This document shows, in pieces, positions 21,717 to 63,237 of a stretch of DNA of 64,000 bases. The notes under the pieces are model-generated. The model searched no databases. It worked only from the letters and a program-made list of their open reading frames with translations, and was not told the origin of the DNA. The translations under genes and the position numbers were made by a program. Source of the stretch: Iphione sp. A-MEVVRFRX5 (lineage: Eukaryota); NCBI GenBank assembly GCA_976226885.1, contig OZ320319.1, forward strand, positions 29,884,001 through 29,948,000, written 5' to 3'. The first letter of the stretch is position 1; the number at the start of each line of letters is the position of its first letter.

Positions 21717-22709
21717 GCACCAAGGTGGCGGACAGTGACTTGACAAATGGCAGTACAGATCTCATGACGAATGGTTCTCAAATAGGCGTGGCTTACTCGG
21801 GGGCTGCCGTGAATGGGAACATAGACGGTACGGTATCAGTAGGGGCTGTTCGCGGCACGGAGGGCTGTGGCACCTCGCCGCCAGGTGCTGCTGACGTCAG
21901 CAGCGAGTTTGACCCTTTGACCCCTGACCTAGTTTCACAATCGTCGAGCGTACCCTCCGAGGCGCCGCACACGCCGTCTTCAGCTGGGGCGCTCGTCGAC
22001 CTGGAGCAGATGGGCGATAATATACACGAAGCGTCGACAGCGTCGTTGACCCCCGCCTCACCGCCACACGACGGCTCCAGTAGCCTCGATGGGTATGAAG
22101 CCATGCCTGAATCGGCCGGTCTGGTCGAAACGTCGGCGGTTGCCGCAGCTGGCGGCTGGCCGGCCCCTACCAAGGAGGCAGTGACACTTTTCGGCGCCAC
22201 CGGTAACACCTTGGAGGAACTGGGCGTCTACGAAGCCCCACCTCCTCCTGCGTCCACCTGCGATGACTTGGTCTCCTTAGATGTGGGCAAAGACAGCGGA
22301 AAGCAGCCGCCTCAGAGCACCGACGATGCCGCTGCCGCCACGCATGCGCAGTCCAACGGCGCCATGGCGGCCCCTGGTGGCACACCTGAGTCGCCATCGA
22401 AGAAGTCGCGGGAGTCGAAACTGCCGAAAATCACGCCCCCGGCGTCACCCAAGAAGAAGACGGCGGCCGCTCCACCAGCAGAGGCGCCACTCTTCGAGAA
22501 GGTGCCGCTGCCGCCGGAACCGGAACCGAGCGGCGGGGCACGACCTAAGACTGCGCCCTCCTCCGCGACGAGCGCCTCACCCAAAACACCCAAGTCCACG
22601 AAACCAAAGGCGGCCGACAACGGGCGGCCTCAGTCGGCGCCCTCGGCAGGAAGCAAGATCCCTTCACCAAAGAAGGAGAGAACACCCGTGTCGACGCCAA
22701 AGAAACAAG
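21717..22709 (+). CDS. MAPT: host tau exon: acidic then Pro/Ala/Ser/Lys-rich projection and proline-rich region (phase 1-1, 993 nt)
   Basis: GC-rich 342-codon ORF. CTAAC branch site at 21694-98, acceptor TTTGTAG| at 21716, donor CAAG|GTGAGG at 22710. Many SP/TP motifs. The first in-frame ATG inside the exon is at 21764. Confidence 0.85.
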
Positions 22710-40700: not shown

Positions 40701-43700
40701 TCTACCTTCTTATTGTTTTAGGAGTCGTCATACAACATTTTTTTTATCAAAGGTTCCAAATAGGACAGGTGCAGATGCTTTTGTTCATGCAGTTTGTTCA
40801 ATCCTATTGCATCATGGCATGGGGATTTAGCTCAGTTGGTAAGAGTGCTGACTAGCACTGGTCCACTGTTGAGAGGTCACAGGTTTAATCCTAGGCCAGG
40901 GATTCCAGATAATGATCAGGCTGATATTACTGTAGCAACAACCCACAATGGTCCAAACTTAAACAAAGGCCCTTTGTGTATAGGATTCTGTGCCCTATAT
41001 ACAAAAATACCCCAAAAACCTGTTCAAAATAAGAGTAGGGACAACTCTACCTATTCTGGTCTCTCACTTTTCAACAATAGATGGTAGTATGCTACTCCAG
41101 GAGAACACGTAAGAACAGCTAAAATGATAGTGAAATACCTATTTCCTGGGTAAAGGTACAATGGAAGTGAAAATAAAATTGTACATAAAGGTCCTATGTT
41201 TGGCTGGGGTGAGACTATCTAGTAGAGATTTCTGAATTTTGTGTGATAGTGAAGGAAACCTCCTCCTAAAACGACTTCCCTGCTAGTAGATACTTTCACG
41301 ATATTGCCATGCACTTAATCGAGTATTTTTAACATGGTTAGACAACTAAATTCAAAAGATAAGATTTTCAGTTTGAAAAAAAAATCAAGAGTTTACAACA
41401 CATTTGTTTCACATGAATTATTTAGGTTTCTATCTGTTGGAAAAAGAGGGAATTTATTGACATTGGTGATATGAAATATCATACCTAAGTATGTACTTTA
41501 TGAACTTTGTTTATTTACATATATTCCCATTACTCATTTGTGTAGATTGAAAACCAACATTTGGCTTGGAATGCCAAATCGAAAATTGGTTCTCTAGATA
41601 ATGCTAAGCATAAAGCTGCCGGTGGACAAAAGAAGGTAACAGATATTACTCTTTTTAACATATGTTAGATACAGTGTGTGAAACTATCATGTCCATCCAC
41701 ATCGTACACCAAGGTGACTATTTGTGTGGTCCATAGTAATACAATGGTCTTTATTCTTTTTAGAAAGATGACACATAATGAATGGAGGCAAAACAGCTAA
41801 TGTATTTGTGACGATTATGTTGGCACTCCATGTAAACTTTGAGTTAAAAAAACGAAATGAAATTCCACGATCTTTTGGCCTGCTGTTCTTATTCATGTCA
41901 TTTTATGAGGCCAGATCACCCAGCACAAGACGCGATGGAAGGCCAGCTCCAAGGTTGGCTCATTGCAGAAGGCCGGTCACCTCCCGGGGGGAGGGGACAA
42001 GAAGGTACCATACCAGTGCCTGCAGCCTCTTACAATTGCTTTCCCAAGTATTAACGTTGAATTTCCAGAATCCGTCCCCTGCAAAGCCAAGACCTAGACC
42101 CTTGCCAGCGAGTGTTTCTAGGCCTTTTTTTCTCTCACAAACATCCTGTCGCATTATCACTACCCCGTTCAGAATGAATCTTTTTGAGAGCAGGCTTCCA
42201 CCTTTTATGTTAGAAAGTCCGAATAAGCAGGATAGTTATAAAGAAACGCACACAGCTGGTAACAGACATTTAAATCTAAGGCTCTTCAAGTTGAATGCTA
42301 CTAATTGACATAATTGCAACGGTGAGGGCATCGCAACACTCTAATTATGCAACTGGTGACTCTACTTTGTGGTCCGTATCTCCAGTTGGTTAGTATCATC
42401 TAATTATCCTTAATGGTAACAGAGCAACTCTTTTGAGCAAGGCGACATAATCTATCAAACCATCTGTGCTGATAAAAGGATCTGTTGAATAGGCCAGAAA
42501 TCTGCAACTGTTGTCTAGATATTGCAGTATTGTAACACGCCATATTTGATGATGATAGATATAGAGATCACGGTCAGGGATATGTCATTATCCCCTTGTA
42601 ATTTTCCCAAATGTGAATTTCGGTGTTTAAATACTAATGGTCTTTTCGTAGTCACCGTCCTTTCTCTTTTGAAAGCATTGGTGTACAAACCTACTAAACT
42701 TGTTCAGTTTAGCGTGTACCCTCTGTATTGAAGTTTGTTTTCAACACTGACACTCCTTGTTCGAATGCACACATCACTATGTTCAGCATTGACACCGATG
42801 TTCTTTGTGTCATCCACATTTTTGTTGCAACGTCGTGAGAGAGAACGTAGTAGTCAACTGGCTATGAAGAAAGTTATTTACACTTGTGGTTTCTAGGCAA
42901 TTGCCTTCGTGGTCAGCAAAAGATTGAAGCACAAGAAATTATCACCATGTACTCATAAGATTGAAGAGATATTTACTCTACAAGTGACTTTAACTTTGAT
43001 TGTGTAACGAACTCCGGACAGGAACACATAGATACATCTGGCTTATATTCATCAATCTTGGTTTGGTGACGGCGCCCCCTCCCCCACTTTGCCCTCCAGC
43101 ATGCCCTTTCGTGGTGTTATAATTGAGCAGTTTGATATCGTTTTAAATGGTTTGACTGACCGTCTCACCTCTTGTTTTTCTTTCTAATTCTCGAATCCGG
43201 TCCTTATCCGTCTTAAAATTAACATCGCTTTTCTGGTATTTTGTTCTCTTTGTCGATAATCTAGATTGAATCCCATAAAGTGACCTGGAAGGCCCAATCA
43301 AAAATCGGCTCTCTTGATAATGCAACGCATACACCGGGAGGCGGAGAAAAGAAGGTAATCTGTACGGGGCTCTCTAAAAAGCTAAACCATGTAAAGCTCG
43401 TAAAAAAGACAACGGCAAAATTGTATGTAGTGTCAGCTCCCAACTTTCTGTTATATTCCAGGATGATGACACGTGAACTGAAACCACTCAATTTTCATTC
43501 AGATGCTGACGATGTCACCAGCACTATGTTTCGAGAATTGAATTGTACTGAATGTTCATATTTAAAACAGGTCAAATTGAAATTAATCGAAAGGTACAAA
43601 AAGAAAAAAAAATACTGACTTCTGTAGTAAATAACATTATTAATTCAATCTTAACTTTATCTAACCTGATTAATCCACTCAGTACCAGAAAAATAGTTAA

Positions 43701-46700
43701 GTAATTTTGTGGTCAAACAATGAAAGAACGGCAGGATCAAACAGAGATATGTAAGCATTGAACAAAAACAGCAACAAACTCAGTGAAAAAAACTTTCCGA
43801 CATGTTTTTGCGCTTTACTTCGCAGGTCAGGCCGAAGAAAAGAAAATATGGTGCTTCGTATTTGTATTAAATATGCATCAACATAATGCTTTGTAGAACG
43901 GAAAGGAAATGTTCGTCTAATATGGTCTTATTTGTCAATCACCCACCTGCAGATTGAATCTCAGAAGTTGGCTTGGAATGTCCAGTCGAAAATCGGCTCA
44001 CTTGATAATGCAGCACACGTGGCAGGCGGTGGAGAGAAGAAGGTGTGATACTTTGTCAGTGTATAAAAGTGCATCTTATTCTAAAATTGACTGATTTCTG
44101 GAAGGAACAAGTTGTTGTCATTTTGTAGGTGCACTGTGAAGGAAATGAGAGTTCGTTACTGCTTCTTTCTCTTTGCAAACAGGAGCACGGATTGTGCTTC
44201 TCCATCCTCAAGCTTTTGCTATCTACTAATAGTAAGCTTATTTAGAGCAATATTTTTTGGGACCATGTGTAAGAATAAAAGTAAGAAATAAGATGATTGT
44301 AGGATAAGGGCTGTCCCCAAAGTATACTGACGTAATGAAAAGATTGTTAATTTCATGAAGCCTAATTATTTTGAGTTATTTTTATTCCTAGATCGAAAGC
44401 CACAAACTGAAATTCAGGGAGAAGGCTCAGGCTAAGGTCGGCTCGACAAAAAACATGACCCATCAGCCTGGTGGTGGAGAAAAGAAGGTAAGCAGAATGT
44501 TTTACATTATTTCAAAGTCTCATGCTCGTTCGCATTACGCTGTTAACACATGGCGTTGAAGACATAGTAAAAGGAGAGATAGAGAGAAGGTCACAATATG
44601 AGCGGTTTGATCCGTGTTGATTCATGATGAGAATGAGACAAATACAAAAGAACAAAATTTTCCATGAAACAAATGGAAAAGGGAAATTTGGAGTAGGTAT
44701 GTGTACCGCCAAACCCTAATTTTTATGCTGGGTCTCCATCTCCATCTGTGCATGTCTGGAAAATCAGCCGATTTTCTGGAAAAGCACAGAATCCAGAAAA
44801 AACCTGCACACATGGAAAGTAGGTCCAAGGCTAAATACCAAGGGCTCACACATCCAATGTGTTGTATTTCACATTTAAACCATGCCCCCACGAATTTGCA
44901 CTGGAGGCCTGACTACAGGTAACCTTTACTCGTCCATGCCTAAACAGCTGACGCTATGACAAGCAGTAAGACTAATGGTTCCATTTTATGTGAAAGTACA
45001 TTGTACGTGTCCGGGACAGGGCGTCCGACTATAGATGTACCCGAAACCACACATAGAGGTAGTAGAATAGGGACGTGTACTGGAAGGTGGAAATTTCAAA
45101 ATTTTTCTCATGATCAGTTTTCATAAGTGCTTCTCTGCTAACATTAAAAAATTATGAAAGTCATTTTTTGACATACTGCCCACGGACTAAATGCCCCCAG
45201 ATTCATGTGTAATTCTCTTTGATGCATATGTAATATAACATGCAGTATGTTTCTTCAACCAACGCCTTGAATCTAGAATGAGTCATTTTCCCTTGGGCTT
45301 TCGAACATGGAAATTTGAAGATATTTAATGCAATAAAAACAAGGTCCTTGCCTTCTGAAGATAGACAACTTCAGATATGTTGGTCATCAAAGTCAGAGTC
45401 TTGTTCGTGTTTCCAGCCTGTAATAATTGTAAATTTTACACATGCATCTACAGTAAATACTCAAAACTGACAAGCCTTGGTTCGAAGTAAAAGTGTCCAC
45501 ATTAAGGAGATCCCTCCAGTTTTTGATAATAAGTACTATGAATAGCAAAAGTATGATGCCGTTCTGGCCAAAGTTCCCCCATTCTAGCTATGTGCCCCAG
45601 TCGCAGGTTGGCTCAGTAAAGTTGCTCTACTGAATTCACACTGACGTTTTCCAACAGGTAATGACAGGTATTCTCAATTTGCTGGAGAGTGTTATATCCT
45701 GAGACGTTCTACTTATTTTCTTTCGGAACATTCAGTTTGCCTTTCCCGTCTTTATATACTTTCATTTTTTTACCCGGTGAAATGAACTAAATATAGATGT
45801 TCCTTTTGGATTTAATCATTCTTTTTATATACACGATTATGTGAACAGAGGTCCCTTTAAACCGCCAGGCGCTGATATAGGTGGTATTAAGGTGTTTAAT
45901 CCTAGTGGATACGACAAATCTGCATTAAATCACAGTTGGACATGGATTGATGCCAAGTTAATTTGAGTAAAGTGTCACCGTGAATAATCTGCTGCATGAG
46001 AACTTAGACCACAACTGAACTCTCGTCAATACGATTCTCACAATTAACAAGAATAGGCGTAGAAAAGACAAAACTACCCTTACCCAAACGCTATGTGGTA
46101 ATGAATTTTCAGGTATATTTCATAGGCAGGTTCAATGAACTACGGTCGATTCCTTTAGTTGGGTAATGTACATCATCCCAGTCGTCTATACGAGATTATT
46201 TTCCTTGGCTCTTAAGAGGCTTTTCTACACACATGGGCGTCATGTGTATTTTCCAACCTGTGCCAGCCTCATGGACGTGACCGCAGGAAAATTAAGCCTG
46301 TCAACACAGTTTGTAGCAACTGACCATATTTGGCACGAGGATCAGAGATTGTTCTTCGAGTTTACTACACCTAAGGATAGACAGACACTCAAGTTGACGT
46401 ACGTCTATCCGCCTGTTGGATTTAAACCACGCTCCACTTGATCACCCAGGAATAGATTTGACGATGCGTAGCTTCACATCGTGCCCAACCTTTATTCACT
46501 TGGCACCAAACCCTTTGCAGGTGTACGATAGACGGTATCGAATCTGGACAGTTTACTCAAACTGAACGAATCTTTCAAGCGCGTTACACACCTGTAACAA
46601 GTGCTGGAAAGGATCATTGATCACGGGCAGTTCGTGTATTGACATCGATAAAAACATAACGACATGTACATTTGTCAACTGTGATGAAAACGTTTTGGCA

Positions 46701-49700
46701 TACATCTATTTCTCATTGTCCTTAAAGGCTACTAAGAGGAGAAGAGGTCCAAGACGATATGGTTATATAGAGCCGATTATGCTCCATCTGTTGTTCTCAT
46801 GCAAATGCGATTGCATGAAGTTCGGCACACACCGCTAAACATGGGCTATTAGCCTCTCGAGGGGTTCTTGCTTAAGGACTACTGCTCAACATCGAACGTT
46901 AGCTTCACTACTGTATGCAATGGAGGAGGCAACAAGCCGGAAGGGTAATTGTAACAAAACCTGGACTAAGCTTGCCCTGCCTGTTGGTCTAAAACGGGAA
47001 GGCAACCTGCTACCGCTCCAGGAGAGGCTGTTCAAGCTCAATCAGCTTCAGTTGAGGAACCACGGCCGAAACAAGAGGTTTACTGCCTTTCACGAGGACG
47101 GCAGCTCTGTGGCGACGACCCGGCCGCAGGCCTCCGACCAGTGCTGAAGGCAAAGAGACTGTCGTAGCTTAAATAGTTAGCGATGGTGGAGGTGATACCG
47201 GGTCCTCTCTGGCGATTTGTCGCGCACATGTAGCGGCGTGTAGTTGAGGCATTGCTACATGTGGTTCAGTGGAGAGCCTCTTGTATACAGAAGGACTATT
47301 AGTTCAGTCAAAGCCACACGCCCAAGTGTGCATCTACGGCTGGACCTAGCTGACTCAGGCTCCCCGGAGGCAAACTCCTTATCATGACCTTCTGAAGTGA
47401 GTATCAAATGATTCAAACCTGAAATAACACCTGGCATGTTCTAAATGATTAACGCCGATACAATAGATAGCAGCGCTTCTGGATCCATGCTAGAAGAAAA
47501 TTGTTGATAATGTAGCCCGGACTTACATCTGAAATGTGACCATATGGAAACGTATTCCAAACTAGCTCTCCTCCATGAATACTTGCTCCCGGTATGGTGT
47601 GGTGGGTTGTTTCTAATACGGCTTCTTACATGGACACTGAATACTAATACTAATCAGTCAAGAAATCAAGCATACCGACTTTTGACGTTTGAGCATCTTG
47701 TGAGCATCTCGCTTACCTTGCGCTGACCCCATGCTTGCTACATCAATTAACTACTGCTTGGTATCCAAACAACACTGATTATCTGTCACCTGCTGCACTT
47801 CTGGCCTGTGGTAAATTCGGCAAGAAGTATGGGCGACCTGTTACATATAAATGACAAATATTGCATGGTCAGAAATATGTGAGCATCTCTTTCAAAATGA
47901 GCGAGAGAGTAGCATCAGCACTCAGTTTGGACGAGTTCGAGGAGGATGACGATGAAGATGACCAGTTTGACTACCTGCGACGGAAGAGTTGGCCAAGACC
48001 ACCGGATTACAAACATGTAAGAGCTCGTATTGGGTCGCTCAAGGATGCCAGCAGGCCAAGGCCAGGAGGGAATGTTAAGATTGTCAACCGCAGGCTAAGT
48101 TGGTCAAACCAGTCCAAAGTGGGCTCGCTGGATAATCTGCAACACAGGCCTGGAGGAGGTGATAAACCTATTGAAAACCATGTTCTCGCCTGGAGATCTG
48201 AACCTAGGATCGATGCTTTCAATCCTGACTATGTGCCCCGAGGTGGGGATATATATGTTTTAGACGAAAAGCCCAGGTGGAAGGCTGAAGCCGCAGTGGA
48301 TGCGAGAAATGATGGCTACAGACCCTCTGGCGGCAATGTTGCCATATACGATGAGACGCCAAAGTGGAGAGCAGGACCGAAAGTTGAAAGTGTAAATCCC
48401 ACTTATCAAAGGAAAGGTGGAAGTGTAAGCATTATAGATGAAAAACCAAAATGGAAAGCACAGCCAAAGGTAGAAACGCTAAACGTCAGCTATGCCCCAA
48501 AGGGAGGAAATGTTGTGATAGCAGATCAGAAGCTACACTGGAGGGCAGAACAGAAAGTAGATTCCAATAATCATGTTTATAAACCTGGTGGGGGGAATGT
48601 TGAAATTATAAATGAAAAACCAAAATGGAAAGCACTACCAAAAATAGAATCGAGAACAACACATGAGCCTAAGGGTGGTAATATTGAAATATTTTCAGAA
48701 ACTCCCAGATGGAAAGCATTACCCAAAATTGATACTGGCTCGACAGATTATAAACCCAAAGGAGGTGGTGTACAAATATTCAATGAAAAACAAATGTGGA
48801 AAGCAGCCCCTAAAATAGATGCAGGAGACAAGAACTACCAGCCTAAAGGTGGTGATGTGAAAATATTTGAAGAGACACCAAGATGGAATGCTGCTCCAAA
48901 AGTAGACGCTGGCGATAGAAACTATAAACCTAAAAAACAGGAAGTTCAGATCTTTAATGAAAGTATCAACTGGAAAGCTTCCCCCAGGATTGATGTTGGC
49001 GACCCAAATTACAAGCCAAGAGGTGGTCATGTAGAAATATTCACAGAGACACCAAGATGGAATGCTGCTCCAAAAGTAGACGCTGGCGATAGAAACTACA
49101 AACCTAAAAAACAGGAAGTTCAGATCTTTAATGAAAGTATCAACTGGAAAGCTTCCCCTAGGATTGATGTTGGCGACCCAAATTACAAGCCAAGAGGTGG
49201 TAATGTAGAAATATTCACAGAGACGCCAAAGTGGAAGGCAGCTCCAAAAGTAGACGCTGCTAACAGGACTTACAATCCACGTGGTGGTGACGTACAAATT
49301 TTCACAGAGACTCCTAAATGGAAGGTAAATCCCAAAATTGATGTGGACAACAAGAATTATAAACCAGGAGGAGGTGATGTCAAGATATTTACTGAAGCAG
49401 CGAAATGGAATGCTGCTCCAAAGATTGACGTAGGAAGCAAAGATTATCAGCCTAAGAAAGGAGATGTCAGAATCTTCAGTGAAGCCCCCAAGTGGGAAGC
49501 GACTCCTAGAATTGATGCCGGAAGCAAGGACTATACCCCTAGAGGAGGTGATGTGAAAATCTTCACCGAGGCACCAAAGTGGAACGCTGCCCCCAAAATT
49601 GACATTGGCAACGCAGATTATCAACCCAAAAAAGCAGACGTGAAAATATTTAGTGAAACTCCAAAATGGCAAGCAAATCCTAAGATCGATGTGGGTAATA

Positions 49701-52700
49701 ATGACTATACACCCAGAGGCGGTGATGTGAAGATCTTCACTGAAAAATTAGGGTGGCAGGCGTCACCACGTATTGATGCAGGTGACAAGAACTACGAACC
49801 CAAACGAGGAACTGTGCAAATCTTCTCTGAAAAGCCCAAGTGGGAGGCCAGTCCCCGGGTTGATGCAGGTGACAAACAGTATGAACCACGAAGAAGTGAA
49901 GTGAAAATATTTTCGAAAACACCGAAATGGGAGGCATCGCCTCGGACAGATCATGGCGACAAGTCTTATAAACCAGGCGGTGGGGAAGTAAAAATATTCA
50001 GCGAAAAGCCCAAATGGACCGCCACTCCAAGAATAGATAATCATGCTGACTACAAGCCACCAGAAAGTGAGGTAAAAATATTCAGTGAAAACCCCAAATG
50101 GAACGCCCCGGCTAAAATACATTTTGGGGAAGACAGTTATCAACCCCAAGGTGGTAAGGTAGAAATATTTGATGAAAGACCCAACTGGAAAAAAGAAGCC
50201 AAAATTGGATCCCTAGATAATATTTCTCACGTCCCCGCGGGTGGAAACCGCAAGGTTGAATCACAAAAACTAAATTGGCAAGCATCTTCTAAAATTGGAT
50301 CATTGGACAATATTCACCATGTTTCCCAGGGTGGTAATATTGAAATTGCGAATGAGAAATTAGACTGGAAAAAACAATCTAAAATCAATTCATTCGAGAA
50401 TTTAAACCGGAAACCACCTGGCGGGATGAAGAGCATTGAAAGTCACAGACTCAGCTGGAACAAAGCATCCAAGATAGGTTCTACATTGGACAAGAAATAC
50501 AAGTCTAGAGGTGGAAATGTTGAAATAAAATCTGAACCTGTACATTGGAATGCCAAGTCGAAGGTAGGGTCTTTGCTCAATGTGAAATGGGTACCGCCAG
50601 GTGGTGAGAAGAGTATAAAATCCCAAAAGTTAAAATGGAAAAAACAGTCGAACGTTGGATCAACTGTTGACCCTAATTATAAACCCAGAGGGGGCAACGT
50701 AAAAATTACATCTGAGAAGCTTACCTGGAAGGTATCAGCAAAAGTCGGTTCTTTGGAGAATGTCTCTTGGGTTCCGACTTCAAGTCGTAGAACAATAGAA
50801 TCAACTAAACTTAACTGGAAAGCCGCGCCCAAGATTGACACGATTCTAGAACCATCCAAAATACCGACTGAAAGAAAAGTGCACATACCTTCCCAGCAGG
50901 TACAGTGGAAGAAGGAATCTAAAGTGGGTTCGCTGGATAACGTCAAATGGAACCCACCTGTTAGTAAGGTTAAGATACACAACCAGAAGCCACACTGGGA
51001 TAAACAGTCCAAGATCGGTTCCCTTGACAACGTTCTTCACAATCCAGGAGGAGGGGATGTGATACTTCCCAAGAATGCCGTTAACTGGCGGAAGCAGTCG
51101 AAGCTAGGCTCAACGCGGAGTGGTGAGTACATGCCAGGTTATAAGAAACTTAAGGGGTCGTTATGCCCAGAATGGCATCGTCGTTAAGAGTGAAAAGCCC
51201 GTATGGCAAAGTGGTTTGACGATCGATCCCCTCACCAACATCTCTTATGTATGTCTAGCAGCATGCCCGTAGCCAAGGGGATATCTTTTGGTCTTTATGG
51301 GAATAGAAAAAAAAGTTCCACCCCTGTGGTATCAGTGGTATCGTCTGATACCCCCATAAAACTTCCTGGCTACGGGCCTGAGCAAGTAATGCAAAGGTAA
51401 TTGACGAGCGGTTGTCCTGGAGAGGGGAATCCAACGTGAGATCACTTGAAAATGTATACTAAGATGATTTTAAAAATGTAGTTTTGTTCCCGGTGGAGGA
51501 AATGGTACAATGTTAAAAACACAGAACGAAGTGGACTGACAGGTCGGAGATGGACTCATTCCAGAACAAAAAATATTATGGAGAAGTCAGTTAAGAAATT
51601 GCAAAGCCATCATGGAAGAAAAGTATCGAATTTTGGATCCCTTGAAAACTCTCATCATATTGCTGAATGTTCCCTGATGTGGAAATGAAGGATAAAAACC
51701 TTAAATGGCATGCACAATTAAAAATAAGGTCCCTAGAAAACAAAAACCGGAAAGCCTAAGAAACCTAGTGTGACAATTGAAAGCAGAAAAGCAAAAAACT
51801 CACGTCCAGTATATGCCAGCATAAGACAACAGTACTTGAGAAACTGAAGTATAAACCGAGGGAAAAATAAAACTTCTCGGAATATGAGATGAGATGAGAA
51901 ACGAGTGATAACGAACGAGAGGGACCATGTCGATCGCAATAAGCCTCCTGCTCTGAATGAAGAATCTGTCCAGAATAAGAGTGAGAAGGCAGGGCATCCT
52001 CCACGACCTAGAACCTTGAGAAATACACGTATGATAAAAAAGGCTCTTAAAGACAGCAGGCTTAACGTGAACGATCAGTCTTAGGCGGAGGCGTAACAGT
52101 GGACCATGGGTGTTGAGGCAATACAGACCTCATTAAACCTTTTTCAAACAGGAAACAGACCACAGCCGGTTCTGTAGGGTCATAACAGGGCCACTATGAG
52201 CGTTGGAAGCGTGAAACCAATGCCTTTTCACAACGAGGCGCCACTGGTTCAACGAGTCGGGGAAACGAAACACGAAAGGGAAACAAGAACAATGGCAGAA
52301 AACGGCGCCATCGGAATAATTTCACTCACAGCCTGTAGGGGGAACCAATGTGTCTCCTACGACAAAGCACAGCCGGCGACTTCCACCGTGTGGAGGCACA
52401 GTCGGACAAGTATCCAGCGATCAACACAATTGATGATGCCATCCAACGGCTATCAAGACACCCCCCCAATTTGGTTAATCTGGCGCTGAAGGATATCGGC
52501 GCCAGCTTCAAACAGCTGGGGACATGCTTCCAACCCTTACTAGAGGAAAGGCCTATACCAGACCATTTTTTTCTGCTTATCGAACAATATATTCCGAGTG
52601 CTTAAAAATTCTTAGGTGAATGTAAACCTGAGGATAGTGAATATCTAAGTATGGAAACCATCATGACTAAGTTACAGAAATAGTGTAAAATGCTTTTGTA

Positions 52701-55700
52701 TATGTAGAAATTGAATTCATGCATAATTGCAAATTATGTAAATTATAAAGGAAAAAATATAATAGTTGTAGAGACACATTCTACTAGATTTTGTTACCAT
52801 ATTTCGCTCCTTAGGGTGACGCATTTACTGCATAAACCTACATGTGTAACGCAGAGACTACACTGGGATTTTCCTTGTACGTTCAGTCTCATGATCTTGT
52901 TATCAAAGATAATTTTCGTCATTTAAATACTTATCTCAACTTAAAATACGGGTTAAACCGAGAGCCTGTGTAAAATAAGTGTAATGAATGTATGCAGGGC
53001 TATTTGTGACTTAAATTTGTATCATAGATAGAACAATGCATGAACTTTTGACGTACTTGGTTGAAAATGCGCATGCAAGTTGTGATTCATCCCCCCGCTT
53101 TCTTTGGACTCGGACGAGATTTGGATCACTTTACCTGATTTTAAAGTTTAATTCAGGCAGAGCCAAGTTCTTTGTAGCATGTATACAATACGGACGTTAA
53201 TAACTCGGTCTAATCGTGTCCTGTTTGCACACCGGGGACCCTCATGTTGGTCCTTCGCACGTCCTTTACCTTTAATGGCCCTTGTTGAAGGAAGCACTGC
53301 ATATGTAATCCCTGCATGGCTTCTAGTAGATGACCAAAGGTAGTTCTCGAGAAGTGCTCGACGATCCTTTAATCAAATGTGTGCTGTAGGATGTGAGTAC
53401 GCCCGAAGGTGTTCTCTAAATACAACAACAAAAAAACAGCACAGAAATACAGCAATGACCATGCAACACATGCCCCCTTTGCTTTAAGTACTGCAATCGG
53501 ATGTTGAGCTATATCTCTGTCCCCTAAGAACGTTAATAAGATGGATGTTCATGTCTGTCTCGAAACAGTTAACAAGAGATTCAAGTAAAGTTAGTTTATA
53601 TGACTATACTGACTATGCATATTTTGCCACAGTTACACGTTCTTACGTACTGTTATGTAGACATCGCATTGCTGCTTCGTAAAGAGTTTGCATTTGGGCA
53701 GTGTTACTATTGTGCCGAAGGATCATTCGCACTGAAATAAACAAAGGTTAGCATTTAGCCAACGGACACGTAGTCGTCAGTCAACACTGTCCTAATCTGT
53801 ACCTATACACCAAACATACAATCATTTACAGAAAGGCCCTGCCCCATAACTGCTCTATGCTGGACCTATTATTTCTTATGCAACACTTGTAGAGCAATAC
53901 ACCCTACAGAGACACACAACATGACCACACCACCCTGGAGCTTTTTGGTGTGAGAACATGCTCGTGCTTTTGTAAGCCTGGCCCTTAATGAATACAAAGG
54001 TATACATGGCGTCTAATTAGGAGCATAAGTGTAAGGTTTTTTTTTCTGAAGGAAACGAGTATGCGCACATACTGGCGAATTCGTAAGGTCTTTGCCGAGG
54101 TCTAGATATAGGTGTGTGCCCCGGAGTGTACGTGTGTAAGTAGACGCTCATGTTTCACCAGTAGGGGCCCCGTCTATTCACATTGGCCCTCGTCCAGGGT
54201 ACACAGTATTACGGTCGGGACACCGCTGACCACCCCCTCATTACTGGGAGGTCGACCACGTACGAGACGTTGGGTGTCTTGCAGCATGGCCTCGCCTCCA
54301 GTGGAGGACGGACCCGACCAGCACCTTTCAAGACGGACTTGGCGGCCCACTCACATCCTCAGAGGGACAAGACGTACAGCCTGGAACTGTCCATATTGGT
54401 CTTGTTATAAGACACATAGTCTCTGGCATGCTGAGAAGCTTTGCACAATCCGTTTGGTGAAGGTGTTAATGGTTGAACTGAATATGTAGAACTCCGATCG
54501 CTTTGTTTCGCAACACACATTCATGTAGCCCTACATAATGGATGGCATACCTAACCACCATCTACTTTGAAGGAAACTAAGTTGAAATTGATGAGCCATG
54601 GAGGAAGACTCAGTTTCGGTCAGTTTAGAGCCGATCCCTCTTTCGTCACTGGGGCCAAATTTATCCGGACACAAGATGTCTGAAGAAAGCGCAGGCAACG
54701 AGGAGGACAGGGACAGCGATGTGAAATCCATGTCCTTTCAAGCTGAAGATGTAGATACAACGCCCGAGGGACATATTGACGCAGAATCGACAAACACGTT
54801 GACAGACTCTCTTCCTGGCGAATCTACCGCACCTGCTTTGGATACTGGAGTCTTTGCTGATCAAAATAAGGATAACAATTCCCCGATTGAAATATCGTCT
54901 GCCGCGTTGGATCCGCCAATGGAGATCCAGGAAGTTGTTTGCTCAGACGGTGTTCATGGATCGCCAGTTCCCATTAGTAGTAAAGTGATCAACTCATCTA
55001 CAGATATGGCACAAGACGTCCCACAAGAATGTCTTCATGAGGATGCAGACGACGGATTATTGCACGGTAAAGAGGAATCACCAGTCGTAATACCAGAGGA
55101 TGCGAATAGCACTACGACTACGGAAACAGTCACAGCAAATATGGACGACACTGGGGGCGCCCGTGAAACGGGTGGTATAAGCAAAGGCGATCATCAAACG
55201 GAGGAAGCGCATGTCGCCTGTCCTAACAATAGCGGTGACGAAGAAAATAGCGTGTGTTTGAATTTAGAAAGAAAAGACGATCTACTTGAGTTAGAACCAG
55301 AGAGCAAGCAAGATCAAGGGTCAGAAGGGAACTTGAATGGGTTTAATCTCCGTAAAGCAGTTGCACTGGAGAATCTATCCGACAATGAGTCAGATTTAGA
55401 GTCAGAGTCAAATTCTAATGTTGATGACTCCATTGACGATTTGCTTCCTCCTCTAGATAATGAGACACCAAACGACACCACTACTGTAAAAGACACCGAG
55501 AGTAATCCAGGGCAAGCTGAAAATAACAATGTCAGTGCAGATGAAGTGCAGTCAAGCATCGAGCCGACGGAAAGGACTGTAAACACTGAGATCCAAAATG
55601 ATAACCAAGTGCTGACTGATGGAGGTGATATGCAGGAAGGATCGGACAGCTCAGATGAACCAGAATTTGAGTGTGAGTCATTCCGGCATCTGAACAGTCT

Positions 55701-58700
55701 TCTAAAGGACGAAGAGGATACGAATGAGTATTTTGCTGCAGGCGCTCATGTTGATCCTAATTATCTTGGAGATGCTTGTGAGATACCAATGGTTATTGAC
55801 TATAAGCCACAATTTGGTGAAGGTCCTCTACTGGGGGACAGTAGGTATAGTCCGGATGGTTTAGCCAGGAAACCAGTTAGGTCGTTACGTACAGACAACG
55901 ATAAGCTTGCCAATAGGTCTACCCCAGAATCCAACCTAACAGTCCATGCACAACAATATAACAAGCCTAAGGTGAATCCGTTGGTCAACGGGAGTTCTAA
56001 ATTAAAAATGAATAGTTTGCTGACAGCCGATAAGAATTTGGACAAGCATGAGGAGGCTAAACCCGGTTCTTTAGAGAATTTAGAGCATTTGCCAACGAAA
56101 TCAAATAAAAAGATATTTAACAGCCTTCCTAAGTGGAAAAAACAATCAAAAATCGCTTCCTTGGAGAATATTGGACATGAACCCCCCCAAAGTAAGGTGA
56201 AAATCTTTGATCAACCCATATCCTGGAGTGCCCAGTCGCGCCTTGGTTCTCTGGATAATCTTTCACACGTCCCAGGAGGTGGTCATGTGGAACTTCCCAG
56301 ACAGGAAGTAAAGTGGAGGTCTGAGCCCAAGGTAGGCTCACTCGAAACACTTAGGAAAATGAAGGATATTGAGAGGAGTTTGCCTGAAAAGATGGATTCC
56401 ATCGCTGAGGAAGACGAAGTACATTTGGGAGATAGTTCAAATGATCAGCGATCTGGTGGACCATACAATGTGAACGTACCAAAGTATGTCCTGAACAAAA
56501 GAAACAGAACCAAGAAACCCTTAAGGTTTGTGGGTGTCTTCCACGAACGGTTGAACTGGAAAGGGCAGGCTAAGGTTGGTTCTTTAGATAACATACACTA
56601 TAAGCCTGGCGGAGGAGACGTCATTGTTGAGGAGGAGGAGGAAAACCAGAAAGTGGAGGCCAAGTCTACAGTAGGCTCGCTGGATAACATCGACCATGTG
56701 CCAGGTGGAGGTACCGTACAGTTACCCCGGAACAAAGTCAATTGGAATAAGAAGAGCAAGGTTGGGTCGCTACGGAGTATGTTCGAAATAAACGAAGACA
56801 AGAAGGTAGTTCTCCAAAAGTTTGGGATTAACTGGGATGCTTTCCCTGAGCATCTGCGCCCACGACGTGAGGCCTGTGATATCGATATACAGACCAGCTC
56901 AGGACTGCGGAAATCTGAGCAGAGTGTAGTCTCCAAGACTGACATAGATGACCGTGCTGTGTTCAATCCTGTAGACCAGTGGTTCAAAGACTACAAACAG
57001 AAACGTGTTTCTCGGCGAGAGATGTTTAAGGCTATCGATAAGGAGCTGGAAGATTCTGTTCGGTTTTCCTCCCATTCGAAACATTTAGGACTCGGTGACG
57101 CGCGAATCAGTGGTAGGAGGAACAGGAAGGTAAGACCCCTGCGAGCTGAAGGTGGTCCGGATGAGCAGACGTTGAGCAGGTATACTCGACCTGAGACCCC
57201 AGTCGTCGAGCGGTCCGACGTCCAGGTACAAGGACATGGTTCACCTGAGCTCGCCAAGAATCTCAGAGGGAGCGACACCACATCAACCGTGCCCAGTGAA
57301 CCTTCAACAATTGAACCTCCGTCACTGCATTCAATAACAGAGGAAAAACCTGACTTGGCCGTCTCGGGACTGAAAGCTCCATACTTGGTGCGAGCCAAAA
57401 TGGATGGCGGGGACAGCACCCAAGCTGTAGGTAATGACCTTGTGACTATGCCAAGTAAAAGGGCCAAGACCCACACAAAGCTAGTGCCAGTTGAGATGCC
57501 CGAGGCTGCGCGAGACCAGCTGGGTCTGGACAGTGCCAAAAAGAAACCCAAAGCAAAGATTCGCTCGATTGGTAACACGGACATCATTCCTGGGATCAAC
57601 GACCACCTTCGTATTAATAACGAGAAACTTCGCTGGAAGGCTAAGCCCAAGGTGGGGTCGTTGGACAATGTTAACCACAGTCCCGGTGGAGGTTTCAAGG
57701 CCGTATACAACGAAGGGCTGTCCTGGAATGCCGAGTCCAAGGTGGACGCCGGCTCGGGCCCTCGTGTAGTGCGGGAGGGAACATATGACGTTATAAAGAC
57801 CAGCCCTGAGAAGTAGACTATGGGTGCTTATCATAACCCTGCTTTCATATGGACTTTTCAACGTAGTGCGTGTATACATGCAAATCTAGTTTGGGATTAT
57901 TTCGTTCATCTGTTTTTTTTTCTAGGAGAGTTGGTAATAATTTATCAAGGAAACATTGCAAGTATCAAACGTCGAACCAACCATATCGAGACCCAAAGCA
58001 TTTGGCATAAATGGAAATGAATAGGAACACCATGGTGTTAGTAAAAAAAAGTATCAGTTATTTGTCCACCCTGCATATTTTCCTCGTAGTTTCATAAGGA
58101 AACAACAAAATACAGTACTTGCTGGCATATTGATCCTCGTGTGAGGCACTGCTCGTATACAATACCTTTGTGTGCTTCGTGTCGATTTTCTTCTTTATCC
58201 GATACTCATAGATAATAAATTCGCCAATGATTATTTGCATTGTTTGATTAGCTTTTTCTTGTCCTAATTTACAGTTTTATTGGTTTTGAACTTTGGATAA
58301 TATTCATATCGTGACAGGAAGGTTTTCATTACAGTGTACGTAAAGAAATTGTTGAATCAAAACTGAAAAGCTTCGGCTGACTATTGTTATGAAAAGGGAA
58401 ATCGTCTCAATATAATTAAATAATGTCGCACAAGAGATGAGATTTCCTGACATCCCATGCCTGGACGTGGGACAAATAGAACTCATTTTCTAAGAGAGTC
58501 TTTAGCAGCTCTCTCCATGTTTAGACAGTTTAGACATTTAGACAATCTTATTTCTGAGGAGGATAAGGACAAATTTTGTACAGGGCTCAGATCTTTTGGA
58601 ATGCAATACATGGGATGATAAGTGTGTATTTAATATATCCTTTTTTAAACACATGCTCTGAGTAATAATCAGAGATTTAAAAGTTGGCAACATATTAGGA

Positions 58701-61700: not shown

Positions 61701-63237
61701 ATAAAATGGTCGCATAGAATTTATAAGGTATTTCATTTTGTAACTTGTAGTTTAGCCATATGTTTCAGGACATGTTCCCGCTTATGAAAACAAAAACAAA
61801 AAACATGTTAGGTATAAGGATAAAAGCTGAACTCAAGTTCCTTTGGCTGTTTTCCATATACATTGTACATGTACATGTCAACGTGCACATTGAGATATAT
61901 CTGTTATATCTAGAACAACCCAAGACTATATACTTTGTATCAGGTTTCTACTAATGTCTCTATAGATATCGCACATGTGTCCTTAGCTTTGAAGGCTATC
62001 CAGATTGGATGGATTGTCCCGCTTACAGATCCGTGAAAGCCATAGATTTAAACCAACCTGGACATTTAGTGGTTATCTGATAGTCAACCGGGGTCAATTA
62101 GTGTCATGCAAATCCATCTGTTCCAGACTAAATGGATATGTCTCTGTGTGCATGATAATGTATACAATGGAACACCGCCCTAATATCTTGCTACTTGGAT
62201 GCCATAGACCCTGTTTATCATTATGAGTTTAACTGTGATGAAGAAACGTCGGACTTGCAACATATGAGCAACAATGCTACCTTCAAGAGAAGAGGGTAGA
62301 CTGGCCTTTTTCTCAGCGACCAGCGAGGAGTTTAGTTTCTCTCAGGCATGCCCGTTACACCTACATTTACTTTAAAGGTTGTGAGGCGCTTTAGTATAAC
62401 TAGTATTCACATAGTATATCATTGTGCCTATATTTCCTCATAAATTATTGAACAGACAAGTCTGCGTCAAATAGAAACGGTTTTAGAATGCACGTGTAGG
62501 TGCTGCTTCAGTTTTGATTTAAAAGATGTCACAGATGGACAAATATTTGAGCCCTGATTTCTATACCTTGTCCTTTAACCGTTCTCTAGCTGGGGTGCGT
62601 CAAGTTGTGGACTATGGGGCTTATGACCTCTTGAACATATTTTTTCCAGCATACACTCGTTCTTTATGGTTAATCTGTGCCCTCCTCCCCACCTCCCCGG
62701 TGTAATTAGGCGGTCTTTCCATGTGTACAACTTTTTGTGATGTGGGGTTGGAGTGTAGGAAGTCCTAACACCCCGCCAGTGGTGACACTGCGGAACATAC
62801 ATTGTATGTACATATGGACAGGGTGCGGGTAGATTTACGCGTGTACTGATCCGCACTGTCCTGCACGATCCTGCAGATGAATCCATAGTTGTCTGGTAGG
62901 TTCATCTATCAGTTCATTATTTGGTTTCACCTACGGTCCTTGCTCCGCGTCCGGAGCTGGAGAAATCGTGCACATGGAAAGACAGCCTAGCCGACCTGGA
63001 TCAACCCTGCACTGCCATGCCAGCAACTCAACTTCAGTTGAATGTACAGTAGTTCTGCAGTCTTCAATTAACTGGTCATTTTGTCATATTTTCCAGATTG
63101 AGAGCCACAAGCTGCACTTCCGTGAGAAGGCCCAAGCCCGGACGAATCATGGAACTCGCACTACCGGCTCTGACTCGATCGGCTCCGGGGAGGCTGCCGA
63201 GTCCATCAGCTCGGCAGACGGGGCAGCAAGCACATGA
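21717..63237 (+). CDS. MAPT: tau/MAP2/MAP4-family microtubule-associated protein (host gene, multi-exon; 5' end unresolved)
   Basis: 13 exons with AG/GT boundaries and matching phases total 2204 nt, which with the 1 nt from the upstream exon gives 735 codons including the stop. The product has nine K/R-x-G-S...(P)GGG repeats and a terminal [19 protein letters not shown] matching vertebrate tau IETHKLTFRENAKAKTDHG. The symbol denotes family membership, not one-to-one orthology. Confidence 0.9.
24171..24214 (+). CDS. MAPT: host tau 44-nt linker exon (D)[14 protein letters not shown] (phase 1-0)
   Basis: Acceptor TTTTCTTTCACCAG|, donor CAAG|GTAAGG. It bridges the phase-1 donor at 22709 to the downstream phase-0 acceptors. 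Confidence 0.75.
28966..29214 (+). CDS. candidate alternative exon of the tau host ([22 protein letters not shown]...), boundaries uncertain
   Basis: C-rich acceptor ...CCCGCATGCAG| in phase 0; 37 of the first 47 codons end in G/C; phase-0 donor GGACAG|GTGCGA at 29215. It could instead start at ATG 28960 or run to TGA 29280. Confidence 0.4.
31245..31511 (+). CDS. candidate alternative first coding exon, Lys/Arg-rich ([15 protein letters not shown]...TKPRR)
   Basis: ACAATGG start and a strongly basic reading frame; phase-0 donor CGG|GTAAGA at 31512 is compatible with the phase-0 acceptors at 32020 and 35087. Confidence 0.45.
32020..32685 (+). CDS. candidate alternative acidic exon of the tau host (phase 0-0, 666 nt)
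   Basis: 233-codon open frame, D/E/S/T-rich and disorder-like. Acceptor TCCTCTTTGTTACATGTTAAG|, phase-0 donor ACA|GTAAGA at 32686. It could also initiate at ATG 31996. Confidence 0.6.
35087..35258 (+). CDS. MAPT: host tau 'pre-repeat' exon [57 protein letters not shown] (phase 0-1)
   Basis: Acceptor TTACTCTCAAATAG|, perfect donor |GTAAGT at 35259, and a tau-like [10 protein letters not shown] motif. Confidence 0.85.
36166..36501. mobile_element. PIF/Harbinger (Tourist-like) MITE, 336 bp, copy 1
   Basis: TIRs ...AAAATAGGTGTGTTTCTG / CAGAAACACATCTATTTTTTTTGCC with a TAA target duplication at 36163-65 and 36502-04. Collinear with 60817-61152. Confidence 0.85.
37208..37326 (+). CDS. MAPT: host tau R1-like exon (P)[39 protein letters not shown] (phase 1-0)
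   Basis: Acceptor TCTGTCCTGCTTGTGTAG|, donor CAA|GTAAGT; canonical SKIGS..N..H.PGGG. Confidence 0.92.
37604..37702 (+). CDS. MAPT: host tau R2-like exon [33 protein letters not shown] (99 nt, phase 0-0)
   Basis: Acceptor TTTTATCGTAG|, donor AAG|GTAATT; aligns with human [30 protein letters not shown]. Confidence 0.93.
38292..38381 (+). CDS. MAPT: host tau 90-nt repeat exon 1: [30 protein letters not shown]
   Basis: AACAG| acceptor, AAG|GTATCA donor, phase 0-0. Confidence 0.9.
40322..40411 (+). CDS. MAPT: host tau 90-nt repeat exon 2: [30 protein letters not shown]
   Basis: TTCATGTAG| acceptor, AAG|GTAACA donor, phase 0-0. Confidence 0.92.
40821..41116 (+). mobile_element. tRNA-headed SINE-like repeat (not a functional tRNA)
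   Basis: Head GGGGATTTAGCTCAGTTGGTAAGAG contains an A-box; degenerate B-box GGTTTAATCC; the body is shared with 12564-12806 on the opposite strand. No intact acceptor stem seen. Confidence 0.7.
41546..41635 (+). CDS. MAPT: host tau 90-nt repeat exon 3: [30 protein letters not shown]
   Basis: TTTGTGTAG| acceptor, AAG|GTAACA donor, phase 0-0. Confidence 0.9.
41915..42004 (+). CDS. MAPT: host tau 90-nt repeat exon 4: [30 protein letters not shown]
   Basis: GCCAG| acceptor (weak pyrimidine tract), AAG|GTACCA donor, phase 0-0; the most divergent of the six. Confidence 0.82.
43265..43354 (+). CDS. MAPT: host tau 90-nt repeat exon 5: [30 protein letters not shown]
   Basis: AATCTAG| acceptor, AAG|GTAATC donor, phase 0-0. 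Confidence 0.92.
43953..44042 (+). CDS. MAPT: host tau 90-nt repeat exon 6: [30 protein letters not shown]
   Basis: CCCACCTGCAG| acceptor, AAG|GTGTGA donor, phase 0-0. Confidence 0.9.
44392..44487 (+). CDS. MAPT: host tau 96-nt repeat exon: [32 protein letters not shown]
   Basis: TTTTTATTCCTAG| acceptor, AAG|GTAAGC donor, phase 0-0. Confidence 0.92.
47846..47851 (+). promoter_or_regulatory. candidate TATA box for nested ORF-A
   Basis: TATAAA about 50 nt upstream of the CAAAATG start at 47897. Motif only. Confidence 0.3.
47897..51187 (+). CDS. nested intronless ORF-A: about 36 tandem tau-like repeats (1096 aa from ATG 47897)
   Basis: Uninterrupted 3.3-kb frame. Short acidic N-terminus, then an R1-like [28 protein letters not shown], then 35 Trp-anchored 28-30-aa units. 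Nine units carry KxGS. In-frame stop upstream at 47852-54. Confidence 0.88.
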   Translation: MSERVASALSLDEFEEDDDEDDQFDYLRRKSWPRPPDYKHVRARIGSLKDASRPRPGGNVKIVNRRLSWSNQSKVGSLDNLQHRPGGGDKPIENHVLAWRSEPRIDAFNPDYVPRGGDIYVLDEKPRWKAEAAVDARNDGYRPSGGNVAIYDETPKWRAGPKVESVNPTYQRKGGSVSIIDEKPKWKAQPKVETLNVSYAPKGGNVVIADQKLHWRAEQKVDSNNHVYKPGGGNVEIINEKPKWKALPKIESRTTHEPKGGNIEIFSETPRWKALPKIDTGSTDYKPKGGGVQIFNEKQMWKAAPKIDAGDKNYQPKGGDVKIFEETPRWNAAPKVDAGDRNYKPKKQEVQIFNESINWKASPRIDVGDPNYKPRGGHVEIFTETPRWNAAPKVDAGDRNYKPKKQEVQIFNESINWKASPRIDVGDPNYKPRGGNVEIFTETPKWKAAPKVDAANRTYNPRGGDVQIFTETPKWKVNPKIDVDNKNYKPGGGDVKIFTEAAKWNAAPKIDVGSKDYQPKKGDVRIFSEAPKWEATPRIDAGSKDYTPRGGDVKIFTEAPKWNAAPKIDIGNADYQPKKADVKIFSETPKWQANPKIDVGNNDYTPRGGDVKIFTEKLGWQASPRIDAGDKNYEPKRGTVQIFSEKPKWEASPRVDAGDKQYEPRRSEVKIFSKTPKWEASPRTDHGDKSYKPGGGEVKIFSEKPKWTATPRIDNHADYKPPESEVKIFSENPKWNAPAKIHFGEDSYQPQGGKVEIFDERPNWKKEAKIGSLDNISHVPAGGNRKVESQKLNWQASSKIGSLDNIHHVSQGGNIEIANEKLDWKKQSKINSFENLNRKPPGGMKSIESHRLSWNKASKIGSTLDKKYKSRGGNVEIKSEPVHWNAKSKVGSLLNVKWVPPGGEKSIKSQKLKWKKQSNVGSTVDPNYKPRGGNVKITSEKLTWKVSAKVGSLENVSWVPTSSRRTIESTKLNWKAAPKIDTILEPSKIPTERKVHIPSQQVQWKKESKVGSLDNVKWNPPVSKVKIHNQKPHWDKQSKIGSLDNVLHNPGGGDVILPKNAVNWRKQSKLGSTRSGEYMPGYKKLKGSLCPEWHRR
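48871..49218 (+). repeat. near-identical 174-bp (two-repeat, 58-codon) tandem duplication inside ORF-A
   Basis: 48871-49044 and 49045-49218 differ at only a few positions (e.g. TAT/TAC, CCC/CCT, CAT/AAT). Confidence 0.92.
51150..51800 (+). pseudogene. frameshifted, decayed tau-like repeats downstream of ORF-A
   Basis: Fragments in shifting frames: [83 protein letters not shown] (51676-51759) and [10 protein letters not shown]. Confidence 0.65.
54598..57816 (+). CDS. nested intronless ORF-B: acidic N-terminal domain plus about 10 tau-like repeats in three clusters (1072 aa)
   Basis: GCCATGG Kozak start with an in-frame TGA 6 nt upstream. Repeats such as [32 protein letters not shown] and [16 protein letters not shown] fall at about 56044-56350, 56540-56775 and 57540-57765. 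Confidence 0.88.
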   Translation: MEEDSVSVSLEPIPLSSLGPNLSGHKMSEESAGNEEDRDSDVKSMSFQAEDVDTTPEGHIDAESTNTLTDSLPGESTAPALDTGVFADQNKDNNSPIEISSAALDPPMEIQEVVCSDGVHGSPVPISSKVINSSTDMAQDVPQECLHEDADDGLLHGKEESPVVIPEDANSTTTTETVTANMDDTGGARETGGISKGDHQTEEAHVACPNNSGDEENSVCLNLERKDDLLELEPESKQDQGSEGNLNGFNLRKAVALENLSDNESDLESESNSNVDDSIDDLLPPLDNETPNDTTTVKDTESNPGQAENNNVSADEVQSSIEPTERTVNTEIQNDNQVLTDGGDMQEGSDSSDEPEFECESFRHLNSLLKDEEDTNEYFAAGAHVDPNYLGDACEIPMVIDYKPQFGEGPLLGDSRYSPDGLARKPVRSLRTDNDKLANRSTPESNLTVHAQQYNKPKVNPLVNGSSKLKMNSLLTADKNLDKHEEAKPGSLENLEHLPTKSNKKIFNSLPKWKKQSKIASLENIGHEPPQSKVKIFDQPISWSAQSRLGSLDNLSHVPGGGHVELPRQEVKWRSEPKVGSLETLRKMKDIERSLPEKMDSIAEEDEVHLGDSSNDQRSGGPYNVNVPKYVLNKRNRTKKPLRFVGVFHERLNWKGQAKVGSLDNIHYKPGGGDVIVEEEEENQKVEAKSTVGSLDNIDHVPGGGTVQLPRNKVNWNKKSKVGSLRSMFEINEDKKVVLQKFGINWDAFPEHLRPRREACDIDIQTSSGLRKSEQSVVSKTDIDDRAVFNPVDQWFKDYKQKRVSRREMFKAIDKELEDSVRFSSHSKHLGLGDARISGRRNRKVRPLRAEGGPDEQTLSRYTRPETPVVERSDVQVQGHGSPELAKNLRGSDTTSTVPSEPSTIEPPSLHSITEEKPDLAVSGLKAPYLVRAKMDGGDSTQAVGNDLVTMPSKRAKTHTKLVPVEMPEAARDQLGLDSAKKKPKAKIRSIGNTDIIPGINDHLRINNEKLRWKAKPKVGSLDNVNHSPGGGFKAVYNEGLSWNAESKVDAGSGPRVVREGTYDVIKTSPEK
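58214..58219 (+). terminator. candidate polyadenylation signal for ORF-B
   Basis: AATAAA about 400 nt after the stop, followed by T-rich sequence. Motif only. Confidence 0.3.
59450..60410 (-). mobile_element. degenerate 5'-truncated non-LTR retrotransposon (CR1/L2-like) RT remnant
   Basis: Minus-strand fragments in shifting frames: [11 protein letters not shown] (~60340-60365), [30 protein letters not shown] and [14 protein letters not shown]. Confidence 0.8.
60817..61152. mobile_element. PIF/Harbinger (Tourist-like) MITE, 336 bp, copy 2
   Basis: TIRs GGCAAAAAAAATAGGTGTGTTTCTGGTAA / TTACCAGAAACACCTATGTTTTTGGCC with a TTA target duplication at 60814-16 and 61153-55. Homologous to 36166-36501. 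Confidence 0.85.
63097..63237 (+). CDS. MAPT: host tau terminal exon [46 protein letters not shown]
   Basis: Acceptor TTGTCATATTTTCCAG| in phase 0; the N-terminal part matches vertebrate MAPT exon 13 (IETHKLTFRENAKAKTDHG). Confidence 0.9.
   Translation: MESHKLHFREKAQARTNHGTRTTGSDSIGSGEAAESISSADGAAST

Follow-up and report, generated by a model that had tools for sequence, protein, structure and literature searches.

An intron-free tau/MAP2/MAP4-type reading frame with its repeats in three separated clusters, nested in a tau gene of Iphione sp.

Members of the tau/MAP2/MAP4 family of microtubule-associated proteins (MAPs) are thought to bind through one uninterrupted run of repeats laid on a protofilament, although the number of repeats engaged and the cross-bridging of microtubules by tau are both still debated (PMC10873104, PMC5002045). 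For tau itself, the 31-residue repeats bind in tandem along a single protofilament, with all or only some of them engaged (PMC10873104). Surveys of annotated proteomes generally find few tau-type MAPs per invertebrate species, and the family treated below is not reported in them (PMC8985376). Here, we describe an open reading frame (ORF), named ORF-B, in a window of 64,000 nucleotides from Iphione sp. A-MEVVRFRX5 (assembly GCA_976226885.1, contig OZ320319.1, positions 29,884,001 to 29,948,000 of the forward strand), in which such a run is broken into three groups of repeats by two conserved inserts, one of them with a helix, a split layout that has not been described for the tau/MAP2 family. 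Coordinates are positions of this window, on the + strand unless stated otherwise, except where a locus label (L001 and the like) precedes them. The explanation that we favour, with moderate confidence, is that ORF-B encodes a divergent but functional paralogue of the tau/MAP2/MAP4 family, intron-free and fast-evolving, which is predicted to bind microtubules through three tethered modules and to use the helix as a partner or regulatory site.

The coding sequence of ORF-B (54598..57816) comprises 1072 codons plus a stop without any intron, and opens with an ATG at 54598 in the context gccATGg. An in-frame TGA lies only two codons 5' of this ATG, so that ORF-B is not readable as the continuation of an upstream coding exon. 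Moreover, the DNA immediately 5' is purine-rich and lacks a polypyrimidine tract, and an AATAAA occurs 398 nucleotides past the stop. The encoded protein begins with an acidic projection domain (residues 1-396, 54598..55785), in which 95 Asp/Glu stand against 17 Lys/Arg (net charge -78) and Asp, Glu, Ser and Asn together make up 43% of the composition; AlphaFold2 predicts the N-terminal 411 residues to be disordered, with a mean predicted local distance difference test score (pLDDT) of 41. From residue 397 on, the chain is neutral to weakly basic. Here, a motif at residues 397-410 (55786..55827) is nearly invariant in three of four orthologues and has no Pfam match. Repeat cluster 1 (units U1-U4, residues 473-586, 56014..56355) is followed by spacer 1 (residues 587-643, 56356..56526), which consists of an acidic segment and a decayed repeat, and then by cluster 2 (U5-U7, residues 644-729, 56527..56784). 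The much longer spacer 2 (residues 730-975, 56785..57522) is a non-repeat insert without matches to the repeat profile, and includes a predicted basic amphipathic helix (residues 791-824, 56968..57069) preceded by an NPVD cap. Cluster 3 (U8-U10, residues 976-1064, 57523..57789) starts with a degenerate unit, U8, continues with U9 as the canonical last repeat, and closes with U10, a pseudo-repeat of the R' type whose final residues are VVREGTYD. PF00418 is the sole Pfam family matched by ORF-B, in five stretches and with a score of 164.9 bits (cutoff 27).

When anchored on their Gly-Ser pair, the ten units fall at residues 490, 520, 550 and 580, at 661, 693 and 723, and at 989, 1020 and 1051. 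The successive spacings are thus 30, 30, 30, 81, 32, 30, 266, 31 and 31 residues, which departs from one contiguous array with a period of 31-32 residues. In fact, the core motif [KR][VILP][GAR]S[LMI] is found eight times in the C-terminal half, as compared with an average of 0.06 and a maximum of 2 in 2000 shuffles. A repeat profile built from twelve Lingula tau repeats gave strong matches at residues 516-545, 546-564, 657-680, 689-718 and 1018-1045, and weak ones at 487-507, 578-584, 719-725 and 1005-1016. Only five units (U2, U3, U5, U6 and U9) score on their own with Pfam and the repeat profile, and U1 does so weakly; U3, U5, U6 and U9 are the canonical units. In U1 and U2, PGGG is absent and its place is taken by LPTKSN and EPPQS, while U4 and U7 are truncated after KVGSL and U6 carries an acidic inter-repeat. 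KXGS motifs, which in the repeats of tau, MAP2 and MAP4 are the target sites of MARK/PAR-1 kinases, occur as KPGS in U1 and as KVGS in U4, U5, U7 and U9. Each cluster therefore retains at least one KXGS core, along with one or two canonical units. Much of this layout had been anticipated by the original prediction, made from the letters of the window: the position of the gene and its frame, a MAP2-like arrangement of an acidic projection domain (rich in Asp, Glu, Ser and Asn over about the first 400 residues) ahead of C-terminal repeats (which we place at residues 473-1064), and spacers of about 60-70 and 250 residues, for which we measured 65 and 258 residues from the motif boundaries. Its grouping into clusters of four, three and three repeats holds for the ten anchored units, but not if these are taken as equivalent repeats, since two are truncated, one is degenerate and one is of the R' type.

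To place ORF-B among known proteins, we compared it with human tau (6CVN), Thunnus albacares tau (P0003), and Lingula anatina tau isoform X3 (P0002). The profile of the ORF-B family matches tau chains in the PDB at an expectation value (E) of 5e-27, with all three clusters matching the tau of 6CVN. Cluster 3 aligns best with Thunnus tau, its U9-U10 covering the last repeat and R' of that protein (42% over 55 residues, E 7e-13), and it also aligns with the R' part of 6CVN chain D, at the end of a tau construct whose structure was determined on microtubules. Shared with these proteins are the acidic disordered N-terminus, the C-terminal repeats of 30-32 residues with the pattern KxGS...N..H.PGGG, and the last repeat followed by R'. 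By its sequence, then, ORF-B has what defines the tau/MAP2/MAP4 family (repeats, an acidic projection domain, KXGS cores and an R' end), and departs from it in two respects, the contiguous array and the structure of one repeat per exon. More specifically, ORF-B has inserts of about 65 and 258 residues in its array, two units cut after KVGSL, a conserved helix in the long insert, no introns, and only a weak counterpart of the proline-rich basic flank. Big tau exon 4a and MAP2a/b likewise have long acidic disordered segments, in which length and composition are retained more than the sequence (PMC12896622), but these are part of the projection domain and outside the repeat array, whereas the inserts of ORF-B are within the array.

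How unusual the split is was judged in a survey of 215 PF00418 proteins, each having three or more strong repeat hits. Successive hits were separated by 200 residues or more only in the ORF-B family and in ORF-A, a neighbouring reading frame described below. The long gap in ORF-A is filled by divergent units, and repeat-free gaps of this size are thus confined to the ORF-B family, which makes the long insert the distinctive feature of ORF-B; the assumption of a single contiguous repeat block as the norm in the family is broadly right. Shorter gaps, of 80-160 residues and of lengths other than a multiple of the repeat, were seen in a dozen more of the 215. Among unnamed PF00418 proteins, P0077, P0082, P0089, P0120, P0074 and others show one repeat, a gap of about 100-108 residues, and then three contiguous repeats, a pattern which by this comparison is a smaller and different kind of array interruption. 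No publication on annelid tau paralogues or on split repeat domains was found in the literature searched, and no source searched gives a name to any member of the ORF-B family.

Orthologues were sought by a word search followed by an exhaustive profile search of 1.84 billion representatives. The word search returned one close relative, P0001 (1337 residues), the remainder being ordinary tau, MAP2 and MAP4, with Lingula anatina tau as the nearest named relative. The profile search added P0070 (869 residues) and P0071 (1001 residues), for which the matches span clusters 1-2 and the helix. A more distant protein, P0073 (L005 1551-3038 of GCA_022702875.1; 495 residues), has clusters 1 and 2 with spacer 1 and is 38% identical to ORF-B over 273 residues, its called ORF being without the spacer-2 helix or an acidic N-terminus. 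Each of P0001, P0070, P0071 and P0073 is a single open frame in its contig. Orthologous ORFs are present in three other assemblies and are uninterrupted at L001 10001-14014, L008 4001-8107, L002 10001-12610 and, for P0071, L003/L004 2115-5120, where the GTG start chosen by the gene caller is probably not the real one. Together with ORF-B, open frames of 869-1368 codons are kept across five loci, each as a single frame, and ORF-B reads through the positions at which the surrounding tau gene has introns. The start context ATGGAG is likewise kept among the orthologues, in which the upstream in-frame stops are 12-15 codons away.

In the alignment, the ten units are orthologous one-to-one, each with a signature of its own (for instance, KKSKVxSLRSMF in U7 and IRSxGNTDxIPGIND in U8, with others in U2 and at the C-terminal end), and units within ORF-B diverge more from one another than orthologous units do between species. 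Segment identities of ORF-B to the three orthologues were 56, 55 and 48% for cluster 1, 54, 53 and 47% for cluster 2, and 67, 52 and 46% for cluster 3 with the tail, the most conserved segment. For the helix, the values were 70, 42 and 68%. Lower values were obtained for spacer 1 (34, 28 and 29%), the rest of spacer 2 (about 18-30%) and the acidic N-terminus (23, 16 and 14%), which is nonetheless acidic in all orthologues. Moreover, spacer 2 measures 246-299 residues in all four species, and in all four the helix begins 60-66 residues after U7.

Between species, the synonymous divergence (dS) of ORF-B is saturated, and we therefore took the ratio of nonsynonymous to synonymous divergence (dN/dS) from two 93%-identical orthologue copies. 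These copies (L001 10001-14014 and L008 4001-8107) are on different large contigs of one ENA sample, at 37x and 32x coverage, with flanks that are also about 93% identical, and they are either haplotypes or derive from two closely related species sampled together. In the C-terminal 705 codons, they differ by 12 amino-acid changes (dS 0.105, dN/dS 0.07), none of which falls in clusters 2 and 3. Outside the helix, spacer 2 has a dN/dS of about 0.08, which indicates that it is translated and constrained, while the acidic N-terminus gives 0.63. A lack of conservation of clusters 2 and 3 in orthologues would have spoken against the idea put forward originally; instead, all three clusters and the spacer helix are kept in three other species under strong purifying selection. 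Given the intact orthologous ORFs at four further loci, cluster identities of 46-67% despite saturated dS, the dN/dS of 0.07 and the conserved ATGGAG, ORF-B is by these comparisons a real gene maintained by selection.

For structure prediction, AlphaFold2 was run on the C-terminal 693 residues with a four-sequence alignment, the alignments being only four sequences deep. The model is disordered (mean pLDDT 40) save for one confident helix at model residues 412-445, corresponding to residues 791-824 of ORF-B, with a pLDDT of about 80. This is the helix-like stretch already suspected in the long spacer, and its conservation shows in the identities and the fixed distance from U7 given above. Weaker helices (residues 582-594 and 718-728) follow the two truncated units. 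The first half of the confident helix is basic and includes an invariant Ser805 in a K-R-V-S context. As a coiled coil the helix gives a divided picture, having a heptad-like hydrophobic stripe yet placing K802 and R806 at core positions. No known domain was detected in the spacers or in the N-terminal part (Pfam, E up to 10), and for spacer 2 the ESM Atlas yielded no usable match and the PDB only chance-level ones (E 0.17-0.32). Spacer 1 is partly a decayed repeat, of which the orthologue P0070 keeps a recognisable unit. By random-coil scaling, spacer 1 would reach about 5 nm root mean square (r.m.s.), and spacer 2 about 13 nm r.m.s. with a contour of about 90 nm.

ORF-B is situated, together with ORF-A, inside the last intron of a canonical tau/MAP2 homologue, the host gene, and on the same strand as that gene. 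One-repeat exons of the host (35144..44490) encode repeats that share 48-85% identity, mostly 50-77%, with those of Lingula tau, and its last exon (63097..63237) encodes an R'-type end, with orthologous exons at L001 17675 and L002 13174. The host resembles ORF-B in repeat family, strand, locus and R'-type C-terminal end, but its repeats form an unbroken array with one repeat per exon, and it has a putative proline-rich basic exon (21707-22735; 342 residues rich in Pro, Ser, Thr and Ala, with 45 Pro, SPKK/TPKK-type motifs near the end and no Pfam match). Its repeats also evolve more slowly, at 55-81% identity to the species of L007, as compared with 52-55% in the three clusters of ORF-B and 39% over its whole aligned C-terminal part. 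ORF-A (47897..51187) is intronless like ORF-B, nested in the same intron and syntenic; its 1096 residues hold about 36 tau-type units and almost no N-terminal domain. The C-terminal end of ORF-A matches cluster 2 of ORF-B, truncated last unit included (45% over 85 residues, E 5e-23; V.LP.N.VNW.K.SK.GS.RS), whereas its array is near-continuous and stops at the point from which ORF-B extends into spacer 2 and cluster 3. We regard ORF-A as the sister of ORF-B.

The orthologous loci show the same arrangement. In L001 and L002, the ORF-B orthologue is preceded at about 6.5 kb by an ORF-A-like array and followed by the host last exon, at a distance of 3.7 kb in L001 and 0.6 kb in L002; in L007, host-type one-repeat exons stand upstream of the ORF-A orthologue. 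The order common to these loci is host tau repeat exons, ORF-A, ORF-B and host last exon, and its repetition indicates that the nesting is old; judged in this way, it has been kept in relatives that diverged deeply.

ORF-B has the look of a tau-type array, some of whose units decayed and within which two non-repeat segments became fixed. Both breaks in the array fall just after the KVGSL core of a unit, and the inserts themselves are under selection. In the reading that we favour, the three clusters would be weak, tethered microtubule-binding modules that gain avidity from the tethering, with cluster 3 supplying the canonical last repeat and R' end of the family. With spacer 1 looped out between them, clusters 1 and 2 could share a protofilament or occupy adjacent ones, and spacer 2 would allow cluster 3 to attach either to a more distant part of the microtubule or to a neighbouring one. 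The conserved basic helix, at its fixed distance after cluster 2, may be a docking or regulatory site, its invariant serine being in a basophilic-kinase context. Several observations weigh against this account. Only five of the ten units are canonical by their own score, the inter-repeat of U6 is acidic, and the basic character of the C-terminal half is weak. For the strongly proline-rich basic flank of the host gene, ORF-B has at most a weak counterpart: residues 397-476, ahead of the repeats, have a net charge of +5 and no SPKK/TPKK-type motifs. P0071 has lost most of the canonical GSLDN/PGGG features (Pfam 41 bits, in one stretch), and yet retains LPKWK, SLRSMF, the helix, RSxxNTDxIP and REGTY, so that selection may act on something besides tau-type binding to the lattice.

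This last point leads to a reading that we consider unlikely, in which the protein is neofunctionalised, the repeat-derived units are no longer the main microtubule binders, and LPKWK, KKSKVxSLRSMF, the helix, IRSxGNTDxIP and VVREGTYD engage another partner, such as free tubulin, actin, a kinase or phosphatase, or calmodulin. The family-specific motifs are indeed the most conserved parts of the protein, outlasting the canonical features in P0071, and the divergence among units exceeding that between orthologous units suggests unit-specific selection. However, the canonical units remain strong in three of the four species (Pfam 165-200 bits) and are unchanged in amino acids between the near-identical copies, and the spacers match no domain or motif family in Pfam, the ESM Atlas or the PDB. 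Alternatively, the separated modules might bind different microtubules or ciliary doublets simultaneously, making ORF-B a cross-linker or bundler that fixes the distance between them by the lengths of its spacers; cross-linking of neighbouring microtubules or doublets was proposed with the first description of the split, and we regard this reading as doubtful, if conceivable. Microtubules in tau bundles are spaced 15-20 nm apart (PMC5002045), a neighbour within reach of spacer 2 at its calculated extension; the conserved length of this spacer and the conservation of every cluster are also in keeping with it. Even so, binding along a single protofilament or microtubule with the spacers looped out is just as compatible with the anatomy, spacer 1 consists in part of a decayed repeat, and no link of the ORF-B protein to cilia or doublets was found in our searches. 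Moreover, canonical cross-bridging by tau has been ascribed to its N-terminal domain, not to split repeats (PMC5002045), and with only one or two canonical units per cluster the affinity of a single cluster is probably low.

Two further alternatives bear on whether ORF-B is a gene of its own. That it is expressed only within host tau transcripts, by an alternative 3' end or a retained intron, as a giant alternative exon, would suit its strand, its place in the last host intron and the conservation of this arrangement, but is very improbable in view of the in-frame stops just 5' of a conserved ATGGAG, the purine-rich upstream sequence without a polypyrimidine tract, and an ORF that comprises an entire MAP layout, including an N-terminal domain and a stop of its own. 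A decaying retrocopy or pseudogene of host tau, or a chance ORF, could account for the intronless frame that reads through the host intron positions and for an N-terminal part that is nearly neutral; against it, long frames are kept at five loci in spite of saturated dS, and the dN/dS of the C-terminal half is 0.07, which together leave this option practically no chance and led us to exclude it.

If ORF-B is the functional paralogue that we favour, its family is a natural, selection-kept variant of a tau-type protein, with the run of repeats cut into three tethered modules at conserved spacer lengths, and would provide ready-made constructs for questions of repeat contiguity and spacing. The locus also shows that a lophotrochozoan lineage carries at least three distinct tau-type genes in one place; same-strand intronless genes nested in introns may easily escape annotation. 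Going further, and only tentatively, the ORF-B family might be an undescribed class of tau-family MAP in annelid-like worms, in which three tethered modules and a phospho-regulated helix bridge protofilaments or neighbouring microtubules, and which would have arisen along with ORF-A by a division of labour among the three tau genes of the locus.

The surroundings of ORF-B are otherwise plain. No non-coding RNAs or tRNA-derived elements were found between 44000 and 64000, the flanks have only four small tandem repeats, and there is no clear promoter-like CpG island upstream, the observed/expected CpG ratio ranging uninformatively from 0.35 to 1.0. An antisense ORF (56991-57740, - strand, 249 residues) overlaps spacer 2 and cluster 3 and has probably arisen by chance; it has no Pfam match, and L001 shows no antisense ORF of at least 150 residues at the corresponding place; the ORF at 54112-54489 upstream of ORF-B, also without a Pfam match, was likewise treated as chance. 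Elsewhere in the window, positions 4207-4362 are a run of 156 N (an assembly gap or masked sequence). An open frame at 31996-32697 (233 residues; 43 Asp/Glu and 16 Lys/Arg, without a Pfam match) is acidic and may be a projection-domain exon of the host gene. Finally, in L007 a host-type exon (...SHKL(D/E)FREKAEAKVGSTANLEHQAAGG...) is present twice, at 6559-6700 and 7821-7960, about 1.26 kb apart, which suggests that this repeat exon was recently duplicated in tandem in that species.

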